Below the pieces are notes generated by a model. That model was not told the origin of the DNA. It saw only the letters and a program-made list of their open reading frames with translations, and searched no databases. Of a stretch of DNA of 64,000 nucleotides, positions 22,459 to 28,259 are shown piece after piece (positions within the stretch are counted from its first letter, which is position 1; the number at the start of each line of letters is the position of its first letter). Location of the stretch: sequence record OM339718.1. One strand, given 5' to 3'. A program made the translations under genes and the position numbers.

Positions 22459-22710
22459 TTAACTATATTGATAACCGGCGTTAGCCTTTTTCATTTCGTA
22501 ATCATCATCAACAAAAACATCGTGATTACCGTGCATGATATCATGTTTCAATTTACGATCTCGCTGACGACTCAATGTATTATAACGATCTTTGACACCC
22601 GATTCTGGATAACTAGGATATTTATCTCCCAGATCCCGATTCACTTTAAGTTCATCACCATACCAACTGTCCAGATGTTTTTCATTTTTACGACGAAATG
22701 TCTTACCCAT
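22459..22710 (-). CDS. Hypothetical basic protein
   Basis: MGKTFRRK start with AAGGA RBS. Confidence 0.75.
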   Translation of the reverse strand: MGKTFRRKNEKHLDSWYGDELKVNRDLGDKYPSYPESGVKDRYNTLSRQRDRKLKHDIMHGNHDVFVDDDYEMKKANAGYQYS

Positions 22711-22720
22711 ATATCATTCC

Positions 22721-23043
22721 TTACAGGCTTTCTATGTATTTAATCACACGGTTTAGTATTTCATTTGAATCATTTATCTCAATATCATCAAATGCATACT
22801 TTATCTTTTTTATTACAGTTTCTTTCTTCCATCCGATCTTGAAAGCATCATTAACGAAAGAAACCCAATCAATAATATAACCGGAATTATAAAATTTCTC
22901 TATCAGAATATCCAACGGAATACCATTTGTTTCAAACTGATAAAATATATTACATAAAACCGGAATACCACTATTGGTATAACCATTTACAAAAACACTA
23001 TTTTTACCTTTACGTCCTAACGGCTTGCGTTTAGCGGTGACAT
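22721..23043 (-). CDS. AlaRS helical-domain-like protein; N-terminal start apparently out of frame
   Basis: FYQFETNGIPLD...IIDWVSF aligns with AlaRS [12 protein letters not shown]...KVDEAGF; the RBS-associated ATG at 23043 is one base out of the long frame. Confidence 0.5.
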
Positions 23044-23135
23044 ATACAACCTCTCTTTTTAAGTTTTAGCTTCATGTGCGGCTGCAAAGCAGGTCGAACC
23101 ACCAAGGCACATACTTGTTTCGTGGTTCCGTAAAT

Positions 23136-23210
23136 TGGCAGGGCGTTGAGGATTCGAACCCCAGTCGCACGGATTTGGAATCCGGCATAATACCACTATA
23201 CTAACACCCT
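23136..23210 (-). tRNA. trnW: tRNA-Trp(CCA)
   Basis: Cloverleaf, loop TT-CCA-AA, encoded CCA end. Confidence 0.92.
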
Positions 23211-23620
23211 AGAATCGATCCGGTCGCACCACCACCAGACTTAATAGCATTGGCTACCCGAGCCCACACATGTAAACCTCAAACACCCCAATGAGTTAAG
23301 CCTACAAGAAGGTCTTGCTCGTTACTTTTACGCTTAGGCCCTTACGGGAATCTAAGCCTTTTATGTTTAACGTCATAACAGACGCGCTCATGTGATGGCT
23401 TGAATCAGTGGTCATTCACAAGCAATACTCCCTATGTAACCTTTTACCCGTCACGGACTGGAACCTTATTACAGGAAAGGAACCTACATCACCATTTGAG
23501 TAATGGGAGAGGTCGGGGTTCGGTTTTTATTTTCTAGCTTTCACTAGATTTTTTACAAATACCGGTGGGCTACTTAAAGCGTCGATTCTCATAGACCGGA
23601 CTATTGACGAGAATCCAAAA
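23211..23620 (-). ncRNA. Candidate structured RNA of about 400 nt between tRNA-Thr and tRNA-Trp
   Basis: No ORF, GNRA-capped hairpins, complementary blocks at both ends. Confidence 0.5.
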
Positions 23621-23622
23621 TT

Positions 23623-23698
23623 TGGAGCCGAGTGTGGGACTCAAACCCACGACCTACGGATTACAAGACCGTCGCTCTATCAACTGAGCTAACCCGGC
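23623..23698 (-). tRNA. trnT: tRNA-Thr(TGT)
   Basis: Cloverleaf, loop CT-TGT-AA, CCA end. Confidence 0.92.
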
Positions 23699-23699
23699 A

Positions 23700-23977
23700 G
23701 AGGATTATAATCAGGATCGTTAGACTGTGATTATATCCTAATGTAGTTGACATGCTATCACAAGGAGGAAGGACGTTCAACTGATTTTTGCCCATCTGTT
23801 CGTTGTTTGGTAAAGGACAGTTACCTCAAGTTAAACCCTGCTTGTCAAGGGGTAGTTAACATATCGTCTTTATACTACCAATCCCGCCTGAAACCTAAAG
23901 GCACGTTTCAGGATATCCAGATTCTCTATGGCTGGCTTATTCCGGGGCATACGTCGTTACCCGTTCTTTGTGCTAAG
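23700..23977 (-). ncRNA. Candidate structured RNA between tRNA-Pro and tRNA-Thr
   Basis: CCTGAAAC/GTTTCAGG and ATAATCA/TGATTAT stems; no sense ORF. Confidence 0.4.
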
Positions 23978-24053
23978 TGGTCGGTGATACAGGACTCGAA
24001 CCTGTGACCCTCTGGTCCCAAACCAGACGCGCTACCAACTGCGCTAATCACCG
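23978..24053 (-). tRNA. trnP: tRNA-Pro(TGG)
   Basis: Cloverleaf, loop TT-TGG-GA, CCA end. Confidence 0.95.
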
Positions 24054-24054
24054 A

Positions 24055-24205
24055 AAAGTTCCAAACCAACTGTATTTTACATACCAGATGACCACATCCC
24101 TATAATGGTTGATTTGGATTACCCCGTGCTTATCCGTAACGGTTTAAAACCGCAAGGGGGCATCGTCTCCGAGGATTTTATCAGAACGTCTTCTAACTTC
24201 TTCTA
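24055..24205 (-). ncRNA. Candidate structured RNA between tRNA-Tyr and tRNA-Pro
   Basis: 11-bp stem TCCAAATCAAC/GTTGGTTTGGA plus a GC stem. Confidence 0.4.
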
Positions 24206-24207
24206 TT

Positions 24208-24298
24208 TGGTGGATGCTGTTGGATTCGAACCAACTTGTTTACCCAGTGGGAACGGATTTACAGTCCGCCGCTACACCGCCATCGTAGCCGAACATCC
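24208..24298 (-). tRNA. trnY: tRNA-Tyr(GTA)
   Basis: Long variable arm, loop CT-GTA-AA, CCA end. Confidence 0.93.
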
Positions 24299-24304
24299 AG
24301 AATT

Positions 24305-24380
24305 TGGCTGGCGAGGTGGGGTTCGAACCCACGACATACGGATTAACAGTCCGCTGTTCTGCCTACTGAACTACACGCCA
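24305..24380 (-). tRNA. trnN: tRNA-Asn(GTT)
   Basis: Cloverleaf, loop CT-GTT-AA, CCA end. Confidence 0.93.
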
Positions 24381-24381
24381 T

Positions 24382-24457
24382 TGGTTGCGAGTGGCTGGAT
24401 CGAACAGCCGACTGTAGGTAATGAGCCTACCGAGATACCACTTCTACACAACTCGCA
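24382..24457 (-). tRNA. trnM: tRNA-Met(CAT), possibly initiator type
   Basis: Cloverleaf, loop CT-CAT-TA, CCA end. Confidence 0.85.
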
Positions 24458-24628
24458 TTAATATTTAGGGCGGTCTTTCACCCTTCATGAATCTTGGTCA
24501 TTATAACCCGGCTACATACGCGCATCAACATCCCTTTTGATATTTTTAGAAGCGATGGGACTCTGTATCGCTTCATTATTATCGTAAGGTCAACGACCAT
24601 TAAATTAGTGAGAGCTTACGATATTGTT
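24458..24628 (-). ncRNA. Structured spacer (three hairpins) with embedded CTAAATA
   Basis: TATCGTAAG/CTTACGATA, GAAGCGAT/ATCGCTTC and AGGGTG/CGCCCT stems. Confidence 0.4.
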
Positions 24629-24670
24629 TGGTGATCCTGTCCGGGCATGATCCGGAAACCTACCGATTAT
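24629..24670 (-). tRNA. 3' half of a split tRNA (anticodon CAT, Ile2/Met-like, or CTT)
   Basis: AT-AA-TCGGT, T arm TCCGG/CCGGA, acceptor strand CAGGATC, A, CCA; pairs with the 5' half at 25184-25220. Confidence 0.85.
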
Positions 24671-25170
24671 TCGACTATTTTAAAAAGACGTACAAATGAA
24701 GACTCGTTCTTTTTAAACCGTTGTTCTTTTGTAAGATGATATAATGTCGAACTTGACGTAAATTTACACTTATCAGAACAAACTTTCAATGTGTATTTTT
24801 TAGATTCAACTAGATGACTATTTCCTTTTCTAATAGAAAAGTGAGTTTGACAAATCGGGCATTCATATTCCACCATTTGTCTACCACCTTTCGACTTTGC
24901 ATGTTTCTTATTATTTTCAGAAACAGTCATAATCTGTAAATTAGAAATAACATCATTCGTTTTATCTTCGTCTTTATGATCGACGTGTTCTTCTGGATTT
25001 AAAATTCTACCCAAATGAACCGACATAAGATATCTCGCATAAGAGATTGTAGTTCGGTCTTCGTGTGAATTTACTAAGCATATATGACGCCTATTTTCAT
25101 TATTAATGACGACATAACCAGATTTCCATCTTTCGTTGAAGGGGTACTCTAATTCTATTTTACCTTTCAT
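24667..25170 (-). CDS. HNH homing endonuclease inserted in a tRNA anticodon loop
   Basis: EHVDHKDEDKTNDVISNLQIMTVSENNKKH beta-beta-alpha-Me motif plus C-terminal CPIC...CSDKC zinc ribbon. Confidence 0.92.
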   Translation of the reverse strand: MKGKIELEYPFNERWKSGYVVINNENRRHICLVNSHEDRTTISYARYLMSVHLGRILNPEEHVDHKDEDKTNDVISNLQIMTVSENNKKHAKSKGGRQMVEYECPICQTHFSIRKGNSHLVESKKYTLKVCSDKCKFTSSSTLYHLTKEQRFKKNESSFVRLFKIVE

Positions 25171-25183
25171 TTTCCCACCTTTA

Positions 25184-25220
25184 AAGAGTCGGTTGCTCTA
25201 ACCAATTGAGCTACAGGACC
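25184..25220 (-). tRNA. 5' half of the split tRNA
   Basis: GGTCCTG-TA-GCTC-AATTGGTTA-GAGC-A-ACCGA-CTC(TT). Confidence 0.85.
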
Positions 25221-25325
25221 ATTTTATATTTTGAGAGGATATTTAACGACACATAACAGCTATTATGTCCTCATTTCGTCGTTATTCACTCACACCGGTC
25301 TTAACGAGCAAGCAAAAGAGTCATT

Positions 25326-25401
25326 TGGAGCGGGTAACGTGACTCGAACACGCGACATTCTGATTGGAAATCAGAAGCTCTACCAACTGAGCTATACCCG
25401 C
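25326..25401 (-). tRNA. trnG: tRNA-Gly(TCC)
   Basis: Cloverleaf, loop TT-TCC-AA, CCA end. Confidence 0.95.
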
Positions 25402-25402
25402 T

Positions 25403-25486
25403 TGGTCGGGATGGACGGACTCGAACCGTCACGCCTATGGCGCTAGAACCTAAATCTAGTGTGTCTGCCAATTTCACCACATCCCG
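25403..25486 (-). tRNA. trnL: tRNA-Leu(TAG)
   Basis: Long variable arm, loop TT-TAG-GT, CCA end. Confidence 0.95.
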
Positions 25487-25563
25487 TGGTGCGCCGTACT
25501 GGATTCGAACCAGTGACCCACGCTTTAGAAGAACGTTGCTCTATCCAACTGAGCTAACAGCGC
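25487..25563 (-). tRNA. trnR: tRNA-Arg(TCT)
   Basis: Cloverleaf, loop CT-TCT-AA, CCA end. Confidence 0.95.
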
Positions 25564-25571
25564 ATTAAATA

Positions 25572-25832
25572 TTAAATATCACGAATTGTACACTTTGGAT
25601 AACGATGGCAGTTAAAATTCCTAAGACCTTTCTCGTCGTTATCACCATAACCTAAATCACCATTTGCATGTGCATACAAGAACGGATAATCTGTACAAAC
25701 TGGAATATTACCATAAAGATATCGTTTGTACATTGTACCCCAGTTATAACCCTTGGAGAACAGTGCTTTCTGAATAGCCACAGATTCTTCTGGGCTTGAA
25801 ACTTCAAAACGCATACATGGTTTATTGTTCAT
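25572..25832 (-). CDS. Hypothetical protein
   Basis: IQKALFSKGYNW pattern resembles phage hypothetical proteins; GAGG RBS. Confidence 0.75.
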   Translation of the reverse strand: MNNKPCMRFEVSSPEESVAIQKALFSKGYNWGTMYKRYLYGNIPVCTDYPFLYAHANGDLGYGDNDEKGLRNFNCHRYPKCTIRDI

Positions 25833-25870
25833 AACATATTCCTCATGCGGATTTTATATTGATTACCAAT

Positions 25871-25918
25871 TTATATAAACATCATATCATAGTTAGAAAG
25901 GATGTTTAACTTTTATTT
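25871..25918 (-). promoter_or_regulatory. 48-bp repeated promoter cassette, copy 1
   Basis: TTAAAC-N17-TATGAT on the minus strand; 47/48 identical to 26985-27032. Confidence 0.75.
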
Positions 25919-26266
25919 GAAGTATTTTTCGAAGTAAGCGACTGGATGTCTGGCTTCTTCATCATACTCGTATTTAGGGGTATCAGAAAACAACACCCTA
26001 TAAGCAGTTTTCATCCCAGAACCATATGGTATCTCAATTTCATCGTTAAAGTCAAATGCTATATAACCTTTTTTACGAAGGGACCGACAGCTAACACTCA
26101 ACCAAGGTCCGCAACAGGATTTGAGTCTACCAATTGCGTAGATATCCTTTCCCTCATTGTTAATATAGCAATAAATCTTGTCTACATCAACACCATGGAG
26201 ATTTTTCCATTCTTCGCTGGTTTGTTTGAAGACCAAACTTGATTGAATCTCAGTAAGATCTTTCAT
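25913..26266 (-). CDS. Hypothetical protein
   Basis: MKDLTEIQ start overlaps the upstream TGA. Confidence 0.7.
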   Translation of the reverse strand: MKDLTEIQSSLVFKQTSEEWKNLHGVDVDKIYCYINNEGKDIYAIGRLKSCCGPWLSVSCRSLRKKGYIAFDFNDEIEIPYGSGMKTAYRVLFSDTPKYEYDEEARHPVAYFEKYFK

Positions 26267-26652
26267 GCTAAACCACCATATATTTCCACATCCCAAGAAA
26301 TGATTTCTGTAACTTTGTAATTAGCACAGTCACCATTAGCCAAACCACGGATACAGAAAGAAGGAAGACACCCATGAACATCATACACTTTGTCATTGGT
26401 TATTTCTACGTCACCCGTAACAATAATGATATTACCTTTCTTGTAAGTTTCTACGGAATTCAGAATACCAACCGGATCGGGGGTATCTTTAGCATTATCG
26501 ACGTTAAAACATTTTTGACCAAAATTGATTAGAACTGGTAGCTTTTCAGAGAATTCATCTACAACTTGTTCACTCAAAATGAATTTTTGACCATTAGTAT
26601 TGACCAATAAACCTTTTTCATTAAGGTTATAGGCACCAAGCTTCACTTTCAT
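26263..26652 (-). CDS. Hypothetical protein
   Basis: 129-aa ORF. Confidence 0.7.
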   Translation of the reverse strand: MKVKLGAYNLNEKGLLVNTNGQKFILSEQVVDEFSEKLPVLINFGQKCFNVDNAKDTPDPVGILNSVETYKKGNIIIVTGDVEITNDKVYDVHGCLPSFCIRGLANGDCANYKVTEIISWDVEIYGGLA

Positions 26653-26887
26653 TTTAATATCTCGATTTTTGATAGAAAGGCTTCAAATGTTTACCACGCA
26701 TAATCTTAACGCATTTACCTTTACAGTGATCTTCATTGAAAATACTACTCCAAAGGACATCGCGCATGTAATTTCTGATGTATACGTTCATATTAAGCAT
26801 CTCATATTGAATTTTGGAGATGATAAACTCATTTTACGTTCAAAAGCTCATTCAACAAAAAGGAATTTGGGTTTATCATCTCGTATT

Positions 26888-26980
26888 TGGTGCGTGAGGT
26901 GGGAATCGAACCCACGATGTGCCATTATGCAGTATCGGATTTTAAGTCCGATGCGTTTCAACCAACTTCGCCACTCACGC
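26888..26980 (-). tRNA. trnL: tRNA-Leu(TAA)
   Basis: Long variable arm, loop CT-TAA-AA, CCA end. Confidence 0.93.
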
Positions 26981-26984
26981 TCAT

Positions 26985-27032
26985 TTATATAAACATCATA
27001 TCACAGTTAGAAAGGATGTTTAACTTTTATTT
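26985..27032 (-). promoter_or_regulatory. 48-bp repeated promoter cassette, copy 2
   Basis: Immediately upstream of tRNA-Leu(TAA). Confidence 0.75.
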
Positions 27033-27280
27033 TTACTTTCTTTTATACCAAGTCGATACGCTTCCACACAGTATGCATATATCCTCGATACTGGGACCAT
27101 AAAAGCTTTAGAAAGCCGAATCTTAATACGTTCGTTCTCTTTAGCCCGCTCATATAGTTTTCGAAATGGATCAGGGTCTATAGGCTGAACAGAACATATT
27201 TGGTTTGCTATATCTAGCGGGTATATTCTTCCACCCCAAGTTACTTTTTCTGATTCTAAAAAATTCATATCATTTCTCAC
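27020..27280 (-). CDS. Hypothetical protein
   Basis: 86-aa ORF. Confidence 0.65.
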   Translation of the reverse strand: MRNDMNFLESEKVTWGGRIYPLDIANQICSVQPIDPDPFRKLYERAKENERIKIRLSKAFMVPVSRIYAYCVEAYRLGIKESKNKS

Positions 27281-28259
27281 TCAGATAGACATCATCGTGT
27301 TTATACTCTTTAAACTCATTGTATTTAGAGTCCGTAATTTCAAGACAGTTACCAACTCGAATCAAATCAACTTCATTTGACCAATTTGGTTTAGTTGATT
27401 CCACAACCATAGAGTAAGGAATCTTAACATCCCATTCAACCGGAGTCAACTGAATTTTTTCTGTTTGGTTAAACCCAACAATCTGGATTTTTGTCATCAT
27501 ACGAACCTTTTCAAACTGCTTGCATGTCTGACGACCATATTCCTGTGATGTTAGCACAATATCCAAGTTATTACAACCAGCATAAAAATTTTCTAATTTT
27601 GCAAATTCTTCAATATTTTTGAAGATTGCATAAGTTGTATCGTCGTGATGAGCATAATCATTAATCTGATCTTGAGTTTTAATCAATCTGCTAAGTTCAT
27701 AATGTTTTGCATTACCAATATGAACATTATCAATCATGATCTTAACATGATTCACAAGGATATCATCTTCTGGGTCTTCACTATCTTCGGTCAACTCTTT
27801 CAGTCTTTCTTGGAGAGTTTTAAGATGTCTAGCGACTCGTTCCGGTGTTACCGGTAGCCAGTCATCTGCATCAGAAACGTCGTATACAGGTTTCTCCCAC
27901 CAACAAGTAATACCAAACTCCGAAACGAGATCGTATACATCAGACTTTACTACAATAAAAGAAGTCTCGTATTTTGTTTTGCTCCATAGGTCTGGGATTG
28001 TCCAACGATTTTCATCGTATGGATAAAATCCATGGGCTAAGTTCTCTTTAGAGACACCATCGTTAAACATGGATACGTTTTTCATTAAGCATTCTAACGC
28101 AAGATTATCATCAATGTCAAACTCACCATAATCGTCATACACCGCAGTAAGTGGGAAAGCACTAATACAGTGTTTACCAGCAACTGGGATCAAGCGAACT
28201 TTATCACCACCTTGAACGATTTGACGACTAACAGAACAAACAGTATTAAAACTACCCAT
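27270..28259 (-). CDS. Hypothetical protein
   Basis: MGSFNTVCSVS...PLTAVYDDYG pattern resembles jumbo-phage hypotheticals; ATG directly after the small upstream ORF. Confidence 0.75.
   Translation of the reverse strand: MGSFNTVCSVSRQIVQGGDKVRLIPVAGKHCISAFPLTAVYDDYGEFDIDDNLALECLMKNVSMFNDGVSKENLAHGFYPYDENRWTIPDLWSKTKYETSFIVVKSDVYDLVSEFGITCWWEKPVYDVSDADDWLPVTPERVARHLKTLQERLKELTEDSEDPEDDILVNHVKIMIDNVHIGNAKHYELSRLIKTQDQINDYAHHDDTTYAIFKNIEEFAKLENFYAGCNNLDIVLTSQEYGRQTCKQFEKVRMMTKIQIVGFNQTEKIQLTPVEWDVKIPYSMVVESTKPNWSNEVDLIRVGNCLEITDSKYNEFKEYKHDDVYLSEK

Follow-up and report, generated by a model that had tools for sequence, protein, structure and literature searches.

Homing endonuclease genes usually spare their hosts, lying either within a self-splicing intron or intein or between genes. 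The HNH enzymes F-TflI, II and IV of phage T5 are free-standing homing endonucleases of a phage transfer RNA (tRNA) cluster, and in collaborative homing a free-standing endonuclease targets the insertion site of an intron, as in psbA of cyanophages. The anticodon loops of bacterial tRNAs can harbor group I introns, among them those of the Azoarcus tRNA-Ile (CAU) and the cyanobacterial tRNA-Leu (UAA). In work of Friedrich and colleagues from 2007, mobE is said to split nrdA of Aeromonas phage Aeh1 with no intron or intein involved. Endonucleases that stand free in tRNA clusters are already known, as are protein genes that an endonuclease has split; SegB of T4, an endonuclease gene of the phage tRNA region, is listed along with mobE in PMC2988022. 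In archaea, according to two reviews, ribozyme-free introns carry homing endonucleases, and Nanoarchaeum tRNAs are joined from halves by an endonuclease and a ligase (PMC4090602, PMC3400036). The locus described here belongs to the T4-like Aeromonas phage P19 (OM339718; Straboviridae, Ceceduovirus; host Aeromonas dhakensis); the window, i.e., the whole analyzed stretch of DNA, covers by its coordinates the final 64 kilobases (kb) of this record, which the region matches at 100% identity. On the minus strand, at positions 24629-25220, a tRNA gene is split in its anticodon loop by an open reading frame (ORF) for an HNH endonuclease. The explanation that we regard as probable is that an intron-less homing endonuclease gene has been inserted into its own target, breaking the gene of an AUA-decoding tRNA.

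Like SegB and the T5 enzymes, the P19 endonuclease is encoded in a tRNA region, its gene is polymorphic among relatives, and it is a presumed cutter of the tRNA-region DNA of phages lacking it. Most relatives of the P19 HNH gene share the between-tRNA layout of these genes, in which the tRNAs stay intact, whereas the P19 gene lies inside a tRNA, between C34 and A35; moreover, SegB is a GIY-YIG enzyme and the P19 protein an HNH enzyme. The insert resembles the group I introns of anticodon loops in its type of host gene and in the loop occupied, but such introns comprise a catalytic RNA of about 200-250 nucleotides (nt), with U preceding the 5' splice site and G as the terminal base, whereas the P19 insert has no ribozyme and is coding end to end. 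As in the mobE/nrdA case of Aeh1 and in intron-less homing (SegF, SegG), the endonuclease gene lies directly in a host gene of a T4-like Aeromonas phage. The host is, however, an RNA gene in P19 and a protein gene in the mobE case, and whereas a protein in two pieces can come together again as two polypeptides, a break in the anticodon loop makes a tRNA useless for decoding until its ends are religated. As in collaborative homing, the copy of the carrier is protected by the interruption of the target, the interrupter in P19 being the endonuclease gene itself. A full-text literature search found no description of an endonuclease gene placed without an intron inside the anticodon loop of a phage tRNA. 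In a number of phage lineages, the P19-type cassette stands bare in the functional center of an RNA gene.

The tRNA cluster of P19 lies on the minus strand and contains, besides the split gene, ten ordinary tRNA genes within 23136-26980. An eleventh tRNA, c[24629,25220], with a 515-nt intron was called by ARAGORN with the intron search on, and the same program made zero tRNA calls of any kind in 20 dinucleotide shuffles of the window. The 5' half (25186-25220, minus strand, 35 nt, positions 1-34; GGTCCTGTAGCTCAATTGGTTAGAGCAACCGACTC) aligns with uninterrupted orthologs and contains the 5' strand of the acceptor stem, the D arm, the 5' strand of the anticodon stem and C32-T33-C34. The 3' half (24629-24670, minus strand, 42 nt, A35 to CCA; ATAATCGGTAGGTTTCCGGATCATGCCCGGACAGGATCACCA) contains A35-T36-A37-A38, the 3' strand of the anticodon stem, the variable loop, the T arm, the 3' strand of the acceptor stem and an encoded CCA. 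The two halves and their cloverleaf, proposed in the initial annotation, were borne out by this call and by the pairing, as the joined halves form 21/21 cloverleaf pairs with a single G-U, at 2-71. They align to syntenic uninterrupted tRNA(CAT) genes and, judged by its sequence, the body is of the tRNA-Ile2(CAU) type, i.e., that of a predicted lysidine-dependent AUA decoder, presumably resembling E. coli ileX. A homolog of 83% identity, in Citrobacter phage Ursula, is annotated as tRNA-Ile, and the remaining homologs as tRNA-Met. In the GenBank record, the ORF is annotated as a putative homing endonuclease and no tRNA is annotated at this place; since split tRNA genes escape ordinary tRNA finders, a survey of this HNH family is useful for annotation.

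The position of the break was determined by the insert-free relatives. In phages vB_AdhaM_G2, 65 and Aszh-1, an uninterrupted 77-nt tRNA(CAT) gene is present at the same spot, between tRNA-Gly and conserved downstream sequence, and reads ...CCGACTCATAATCGG..., with the loop CTCATAA. Only a break between C34 and A35 turns the P19 halves into this loop, and the junction after C34 with the anticodon CAT, suggested in the initial annotation, was thereby confirmed by the alignment of insert-free relatives for which it had called. Two other registers were rejected, those with the anticodons AAT and CTT, the latter being the alternative lysine reading of the initial annotation; both stem solely from the intron placement of ARAGORN, and AAT is unlike every uninterrupted ortholog. 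The presence of the insert is polymorphic: it is found in P19 and absent from G2, 65, Aszh-1 and others, whose flanks are 90-98% identical and whose empty site is intact; G2 was isolated on the host species of P19. Among 50,697 phage records, P19 alone matched its joined halves as a split gene, and no other of these records contained an HNH protein more than 49% identical to the three queried split-clade proteins. P19 is the sole cultured phage found here with the split arrangement and, being cultured, makes the fate of the split tRNA directly answerable. A pattern search for the exon-leader junction in IMG/VR gave 6 matches, none with a tRNA gene.

The whole insert (24671-25185, minus strand, 515 nt) lies between C34 and A35 and comprises a leader and the ORF up to the last base before A35. 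It starts with TTTAAA, ends with GTCGA and is coding over 500 of its 515 nt, its sole non-coding part being the 15-nt leader TTTAAAGGTGGGAAA (25171-25185, minus strand), which contains a ribosome-binding site; the sequence preceding the ORF reads AAAGGTGGGAAAATG. The ORF itself (24667-25170, minus strand, 167 amino acids) encodes an HNH_3 catalytic motif and a C-terminal Cys4 zinc-finger-like module, and its stop codon TAA (24669-24667) is formed by T36-A37-A38 of the tRNA. The ribosome-binding site after the 5' half, the stop codon supplied by the tRNA and the almost entirely coding character of the insert had all been noticed from the letters alone, and each of them stood. The protein matched Pfam HNH_3 (E 2e-7, 30.9 bits against a cut-off of 24.8) and PHROG 14913, an HNH endonuclease (E 3e-42), with a weak match to I-HmuI (PDB 1u3e). 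In the alignment of the family, E61, V63, D64, H65, N77, N86 and the four Cys are invariant.

The split gene is not confined to P19. In the loci fetched around HNH homologs and relatives (numbered with the prefix L, L002 being phage G2 and L007 Escherichia phage Turkey5), the C34/A35 junction of tRNA(CAT) genes is occupied in L009, L010, L098, L104, L105, L109-111 and L115 as well as in P19, and the split layout is present in at least eight lineages, i.e., P19 and at least seven lineages of uncultured phages. The identity of their HNH proteins to that of P19 is 80% in L010, 79% in L009, 55% in L098, 49% in L115, 47% in L104, 47% in L109/110/111 (also L184-187) and 42% in L105. These proteins all belong to a single clade (22 rows, support 91/99), in which they are intermingled with free-standing members located 9-10 nt from an intact tRNA(CAT). 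Purine-rich leaders of 14-21 nt occur in all eight lineages, the inserts are 503-515 nt long, or 467 nt in L010 owing to a deletion, and the stop codon falls on T36-A37-A38 in all but L104. The 5' ends of the inserts differ among lineages (TTTAAAGG, CTTATAGG, ACATAAGG, ACAAAAAGG, TTGTTAGG, ACAGATTGG), and the loop bases C32-T33-C34 and A35-A38 are invariant across the eight. The exons of the eight split alleles are diverse, yet RNAalifold, with both intron ends included, returned exactly the cloverleaf, with compensatory changes at 17/21 pairs and 1/168 cells broken. Archaeal introns and split tRNAs need a bulge-helix-bulge motif and the archaeal splicing endonuclease; in the P19-type alleles no such motif is conserved at the exon-intron borders, the four cloverleaf helices being all that RNAalifold found in the eight alleles, and we know of no archaeal-type splicing endonuclease in bacteria or their phages. 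Decayed exons were observed in two further lineages: in L011 (676-1232), deletions in both halves surround an intact HNH ORF, and in L195 (1451-1941), the 5' half is truncated and the HNH ORF frameshifted. Both kept a perfect acceptor stem of seven base pairs and the T arm, and lost the parts of the D arm and anticodon stem beside the insert. Other HNH clades occupy the anticodon loops of other tRNAs in L049, L181 and L182, and possibly in L116 and L130. In L010, the HNH ORF (2262-2717) has lost, in frame, 16 residues that are near-invariant in the family (ARYLMSVHLGR...), while its frame and both tRNA halves are intact.

The wider HNH family comprises 227 homologs in a large protein database at E<=1e-10, and its genomic contexts were drawn from isolate phages, IMG/VR, JGI metagenomes and public assemblies; in IMG/VR, a single-protein query gave no relatives and an alignment query was needed to recover them. 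For the count of contexts, 102 non-redundant loci were used, the match spanning at least 90 residues in each. The HNH gene has a tRNA on the same strand within 60 nt in 59 of them, lies inside a predicted split tRNA in 12 and has a same-strand tRNA at 61-500 nt in 14; a tRNA is located elsewhere in the locus in 2 cases, and no tRNA is present in the remaining 15, often short, loci. Among the anticodons nearest to the HNH gene, cat is the most frequent (25), followed by tat (11) and tct (9). The genes lie 0-30 nt from the upstream tRNA, and the ORF ends often overlap the downstream tRNA by 9-37 nt. The family consists of phage tRNA-cluster endonucleases centered on AUA-reading tRNA genes, most of them free-standing at a distance of a few bases from a same-strand tRNA. 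It is nearly absent from 185,579 genomes, in which only 8 weak loci were found, mostly on contigs of metagenome-assembled genomes and probably of phage origin; a split tRNA-Ile2 in a cellular genome, which would favor splicing, was sought in the same set and rejected on account of this near-absence. In three loci, L007 (820-1179, Escherichia phage Turkey5), L127 (629-926) and L159 (1936-2247), a tRNA near the family HNH gene carries a true group I intron in its anticodon loop. The HNH gene lies within 20 nt of the intron-bearing tRNA in L007 and L159, and about 145 nt upstream, beyond another tRNA, in L127. This layout resembles collaborative homing, with the group I intron as the interrupter. 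The intron host of L007 is a tRNA-Ile2-like gene, located upstream of the family HNH gene at a distance of 19 nt and split after U36; the P19 insert is positioned two bases upstream of this point (34/35).

The ratio of nonsynonymous to synonymous substitution rates (dN/dS) of the HNH gene among P19, L010 and L009 is 0.07-0.11, at dS 0.77-1.3. Such strong purifying selection points to continued selection for cutting and, therefore, to continued homing. The exons do not share the history of the HNH gene. The ORFs of P19 and L010 are 86.5% identical and their exons 83% and 64%, and the exons of L010 are the allele of phage 65 save for two T-loop bases and a one-base difference in the C run of the acceptor stem. 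Targets do exist, in that IMG/VR contains intact alleles with other outer stems; these share the central 27 nt, for which the search was exact, and almost the whole of the 40 nt around them. Among L184-L187, 10 substitutions occurred in 504 intron nt and 0 in 77 exon nt, where about 1.5 were expected, so this comparison is without power. Dead halves drifting along with the HNH gene were excluded, as the silent sites are near saturation and the stems perfect. This leaves two scenarios: either homing into intact alleles is frequent and the carriers are young, or the halves are under selection.

The T loop of the P19 split tRNA is ATCATGC, with A54/T58 in place of T54/A58, which are near-universal in tRNAs. 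That this swap is no sign of decay, as the initial annotation held, agrees with its occurrence in at least ten uninterrupted genes among the 286 distinct tRNAs predicted in the fetched loci, for example as ATCGTTA in the tRNA-Gly of phage G2 and as ATCGTAG, ATCGTAC, ATCGTAA and AGCATGT in several tRNA(CAT) genes. As a recurring variant of uninterrupted phage tRNAs, it says nothing on decay and was rejected as a mark of it. T loops of this type (ATCGTNN or AGCATGT) are found at L002 1680-1755, which is the tRNA-Gly of G2, in the tRNA(CAT) genes of L064, L113, L131, L137 and L144, and in tRNAs of L025, L133 and L170. To our knowledge the variant has no description, and it could have a bearing on T-loop modification or on the evasion of host nucleases.

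The interruption of the tRNA by a homing endonuclease, one of the possibilities raised in the initial annotation, is well supported by the absence of the insert from close relatives, the occupation of the same site in at least eight lineages, the purifying selection on the HNH gene and the origin of the exons from different alleles. A minimal cassette, consisting of a ribosome-binding site and the HNH ORF with no RNA catalyst, would have been inserted into tRNA-Ile2(CAU) DNA at C34/A35. The HNH protein probably recognizes and cuts the anticodon stem-loop DNA (...CCGACTCATAATCGG...) of cassette-free alleles, and the repair of the cut allele would copy the cassette in. The carrier would be immune because the cassette inside the target breaks the site; for self-protection, the cassette may thus behave like an intron-borne endonuclease, but without the intron. 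Its transcription would be that of the tRNA operon, and its translation would begin at its own ribosome-binding site and stop on the UAA of the tRNA; RNase P and 3'-end processing are probably still guided by the tRNA arms that flank the transcript on either side. Most probably the broken tRNA is not rebuilt, which is likely to have left P19 without its AUA decoder. The halves would look perfect because the element keeps moving into intact alleles, its carriers being young or short-lived.

Several observations weigh against this interpretation. No close intact counterpart of the P19 exons was found, the best in isolate genomes having 83% identity, and exact matches to the P19 T arm in IMG/VR numbered 0. 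The cloverleaf is perfect in 8 of 10 lineages despite silent-site saturation of the adjacent ORFs, so that either very frequent re-homing or selection on the halves is needed, and L010 keeps perfect exons though its HNH protein has lost 16 conserved residues. Some carriers have only two or three tRNA genes, the split one included, and in some only tRNA-Arg(tct) and the split gene are present in the 12-20 kb examined; keeping a dead gene would be odd there, which mildly favors function. Moreover, the split tRNA of the L184 lineage has a gene of an Rnl1-family RNA ligase (PF09511, E 4e-20) at a distance of about 480 nt on its downstream side.

The first alternative to be weighed is self-splicing, by a group I or II intron with a catalytic core that shares its sequence with the ORF. 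Anticodon loops of tRNAs are the classic bacterial group I site, relatives of the P19 HNH gene adjoin tRNAs bearing group I introns, and a register CT/C...G/AATAA would put U at the end of the 5' exon and G at the end of the insert. That register, however, gives the anticodon AAT, unlike all uninterrupted orthologs, and the ortholog-defined junction leaves C34 at the end of the 5' exon and A at the end of the insert, not the U...G of group I introns. An Rfam search of 22500-27500 at E<=10 returned tRNAs only, with no other family on the insert: neither the group I catalytic core (RF00028) nor a group II intron was matched in the P19 region, and the insert ends are TTTAAA...GTCGA, not the GUGYG...AY of group II introns. 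Eight further loci with a split, decayed or odd arrangement, searched with thresholds of E<=10 or E<=1, likewise gave no ribozyme. This negative is meaningful because the same search, as a positive control, detected the group I introns in the tRNAs of L007, L127 and L159 (95, 68 and 39 bits), and small self-cleaving ribozymes were rejected by these scans along with group I and II introns. The insert has only 15 non-coding nt, and the silent sites of the ORF, being near saturation, show no sign of an RNA constraint within it; the absence of a ribozyme core and terminal G remarked on in the initial annotation thus holds, and self-splicing appears extremely improbable. A pairing of the 5' exon end CGACU with AGUCG at the 3' end of the insert was seen in P19 and L010 and not in L009, L098, L104 and L109; it was taken as chance because it is not conserved and is dictated by Val-Glu codons.

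The pre-tRNA cloverleaf might also be spliced by proteins, with the 515-nt messenger RNA (mRNA) forming a giant anticodon loop. Nucleases would cut after C34 and before A35, and polynucleotide kinase (PNK) with Rnl1/Rnl2 or a host ligase would rejoin the ends and restore tRNA-Ile2, so that the AUA decoder would be preserved for the carrier, and immunity for the selfish gene; the predicted product is a 77-nt RNA, ...GACUC-AUAAUCGG... (...AGAGCAACCGACUC-AUAAUCGGUAGGUUUCCGGAUCAUGC...). The full pairing of the halves in eight lineages, with compensatory changes beside saturated silent sites, the invariant loop bases, the T loop being a normal phage variant, the few tRNA genes of some carriers and the ligase gene of the L184 lineage all speak for such splicing. 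P19 encodes PNK (P19_0104), two RNA ligases (P19_0018, P19_0174) and a CCA-adding enzyme; however, PNK and the ligases are also present in HNH-less T4-type relatives generally, and being standard T4-like equipment they permit rejoining but do not support it. The ligase adjacency of L184 was dismissed as a general feature, since it was seen in this one lineage and was not repeated in the L104 lineage, where neither the 10 kb upstream nor the downstream contig part of 1.9 kb contains a ligase, nor in the L105 lineage, whose nearest ligase is 9 kb off. We know of no candidate endonuclease; none is present in the P19 annotation (records 1-150000), in which no EndA-type search was made. The intron ends have no common sequence, structure or conserved pairing by which the cut sites might be marked, decay of the halves has occurred in two lineages, in L011 around an intact HNH gene, and homing into a variety of intact alleles accounts for the exon pattern just as well. 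The rebuilt or two-piece tRNA offered as an option in the initial annotation has accordingly gained no positive evidence, and we consider protein-dependent splicing unlikely. A further reading, possible although not probable, is that decoding has been lost and the element itself selects for the halves as parts of a tRNA-shaped mRNA, in which the acceptor/T-arm helix would recruit RNase P and 3' maturation and protect the endonuclease mRNA; the engineered "tRNA scaffold" that stabilizes recombinant RNAs would have its natural counterpart here. This idea is compatible with, and overlaps, the insertion of a homing endonuclease gene as far as the events in DNA are concerned. The family is packed against tRNAs or overlaps them, so tRNA processing must define the ends of HNH mRNAs, the minimum-energy fold of the whole 592-nt unit retains the acceptor, D and T arms, and, anecdotally, L011 and L195 keep the acceptor stem and T arm while losing parts of the D arm and anticodon stem. 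The decayed cases are, however, two in number, the intact anticodon stem and loop bases of eight lineages are left unexplained, and free-standing relatives thrive outside tRNAs.

If the tRNA is simply killed by the inserted homing endonuclease gene, the locus illustrates how high a price a phage can be made to pay for a driving element, and provides a snapshot of an endonuclease in its own target without an intron, which relates to the proposed path from a free-standing endonuclease to a mobile intron. Rejoining of the tRNA, if it occurs, would be without precedent in the bacterial world as protein-dependent tRNA splicing, or as a ribozyme-free intron, and phage PNK and RNA ligase would gain a role beyond repairing the damage caused by host anticodon nucleases.

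The split gene of P19 is part of a larger block (24619-25395, minus strand) that is unlike its closest relatives. In the BLASTN comparison of P19 with Aszh-1, an identity of about 97-99% breaks off at query positions 206 and 982, and the foreign block extends from inside tRNA-Gly to about 10 nt beyond the split tRNA. Within it lie the greater part of tRNA-Gly, a spacer of 105 nt and the HNH gene inside its split tRNA; in its place, the relatives have a different tRNA-Gly allele, an 84-nt spacer, an intact tRNA-Ile2 and an ORF of 64 amino acids. The P19 tRNA-Gly (25326-25401, minus strand), which differs from the allele of close relatives, is 95-96% identical to the tRNA-Gly of Vequintavirinae-like phages of Serratia, Pectobacterium and Escherichia, and this likeness hints at the donor lineage. 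The 64-amino-acid ORF (PHROG 21687) is conserved directly 3' of the intact tRNA-Ile2 in HNH-less relatives (L002 1939-2133, L003 2040-2234); it is missing in both HNH-bearing genomes of the group (P19, near 24620-24629, and L010), where 7-8 nt are found instead.

Some further features of the family and the cluster were also observed. In L024 (1449-1972), an orphan tRNA 5' half is followed by an HNH ORF and then by a complete tRNA(CAT) with the stop codon of the ORF in its D loop, and this cassette seems, from its layout, to carry a replacement 5' part of the tRNA, another way to keep the tRNA whole. In Escherichia phage Bas91 (L006 1198-1686) and Serratia phage ChuuTotoro (L203 1006-1578), the ORF overlaps the 5' end of the next tRNA, Arg and Gly, respectively, by about 10 nt; read in the HNH frame, the Bas91 tRNA-Arg resembles the C-terminus of the family, a likeness too weak to interpret. 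The Rnl1 gene of the L184 lineage is located at L184 11008-12090, on the 176-kb contig of an uncultured phage, and also in L185, L186 and L187; between it and the split tRNA are an atypical tRNA call of 68 nt (anticodon tta) and tRNA-Arg(tct). Finally, the "tRNA-Met(cat)" neighboring the split gene in P19 (24382-24457, minus strand) is atypical, with an Rfam score of only 31 bits, barely over the cut-off, the anticodon loop CTCATTA (T at position 37) and a poor D stem; it is conserved in phages 65 and G2 and may be a tRNA-like RNA with another role.

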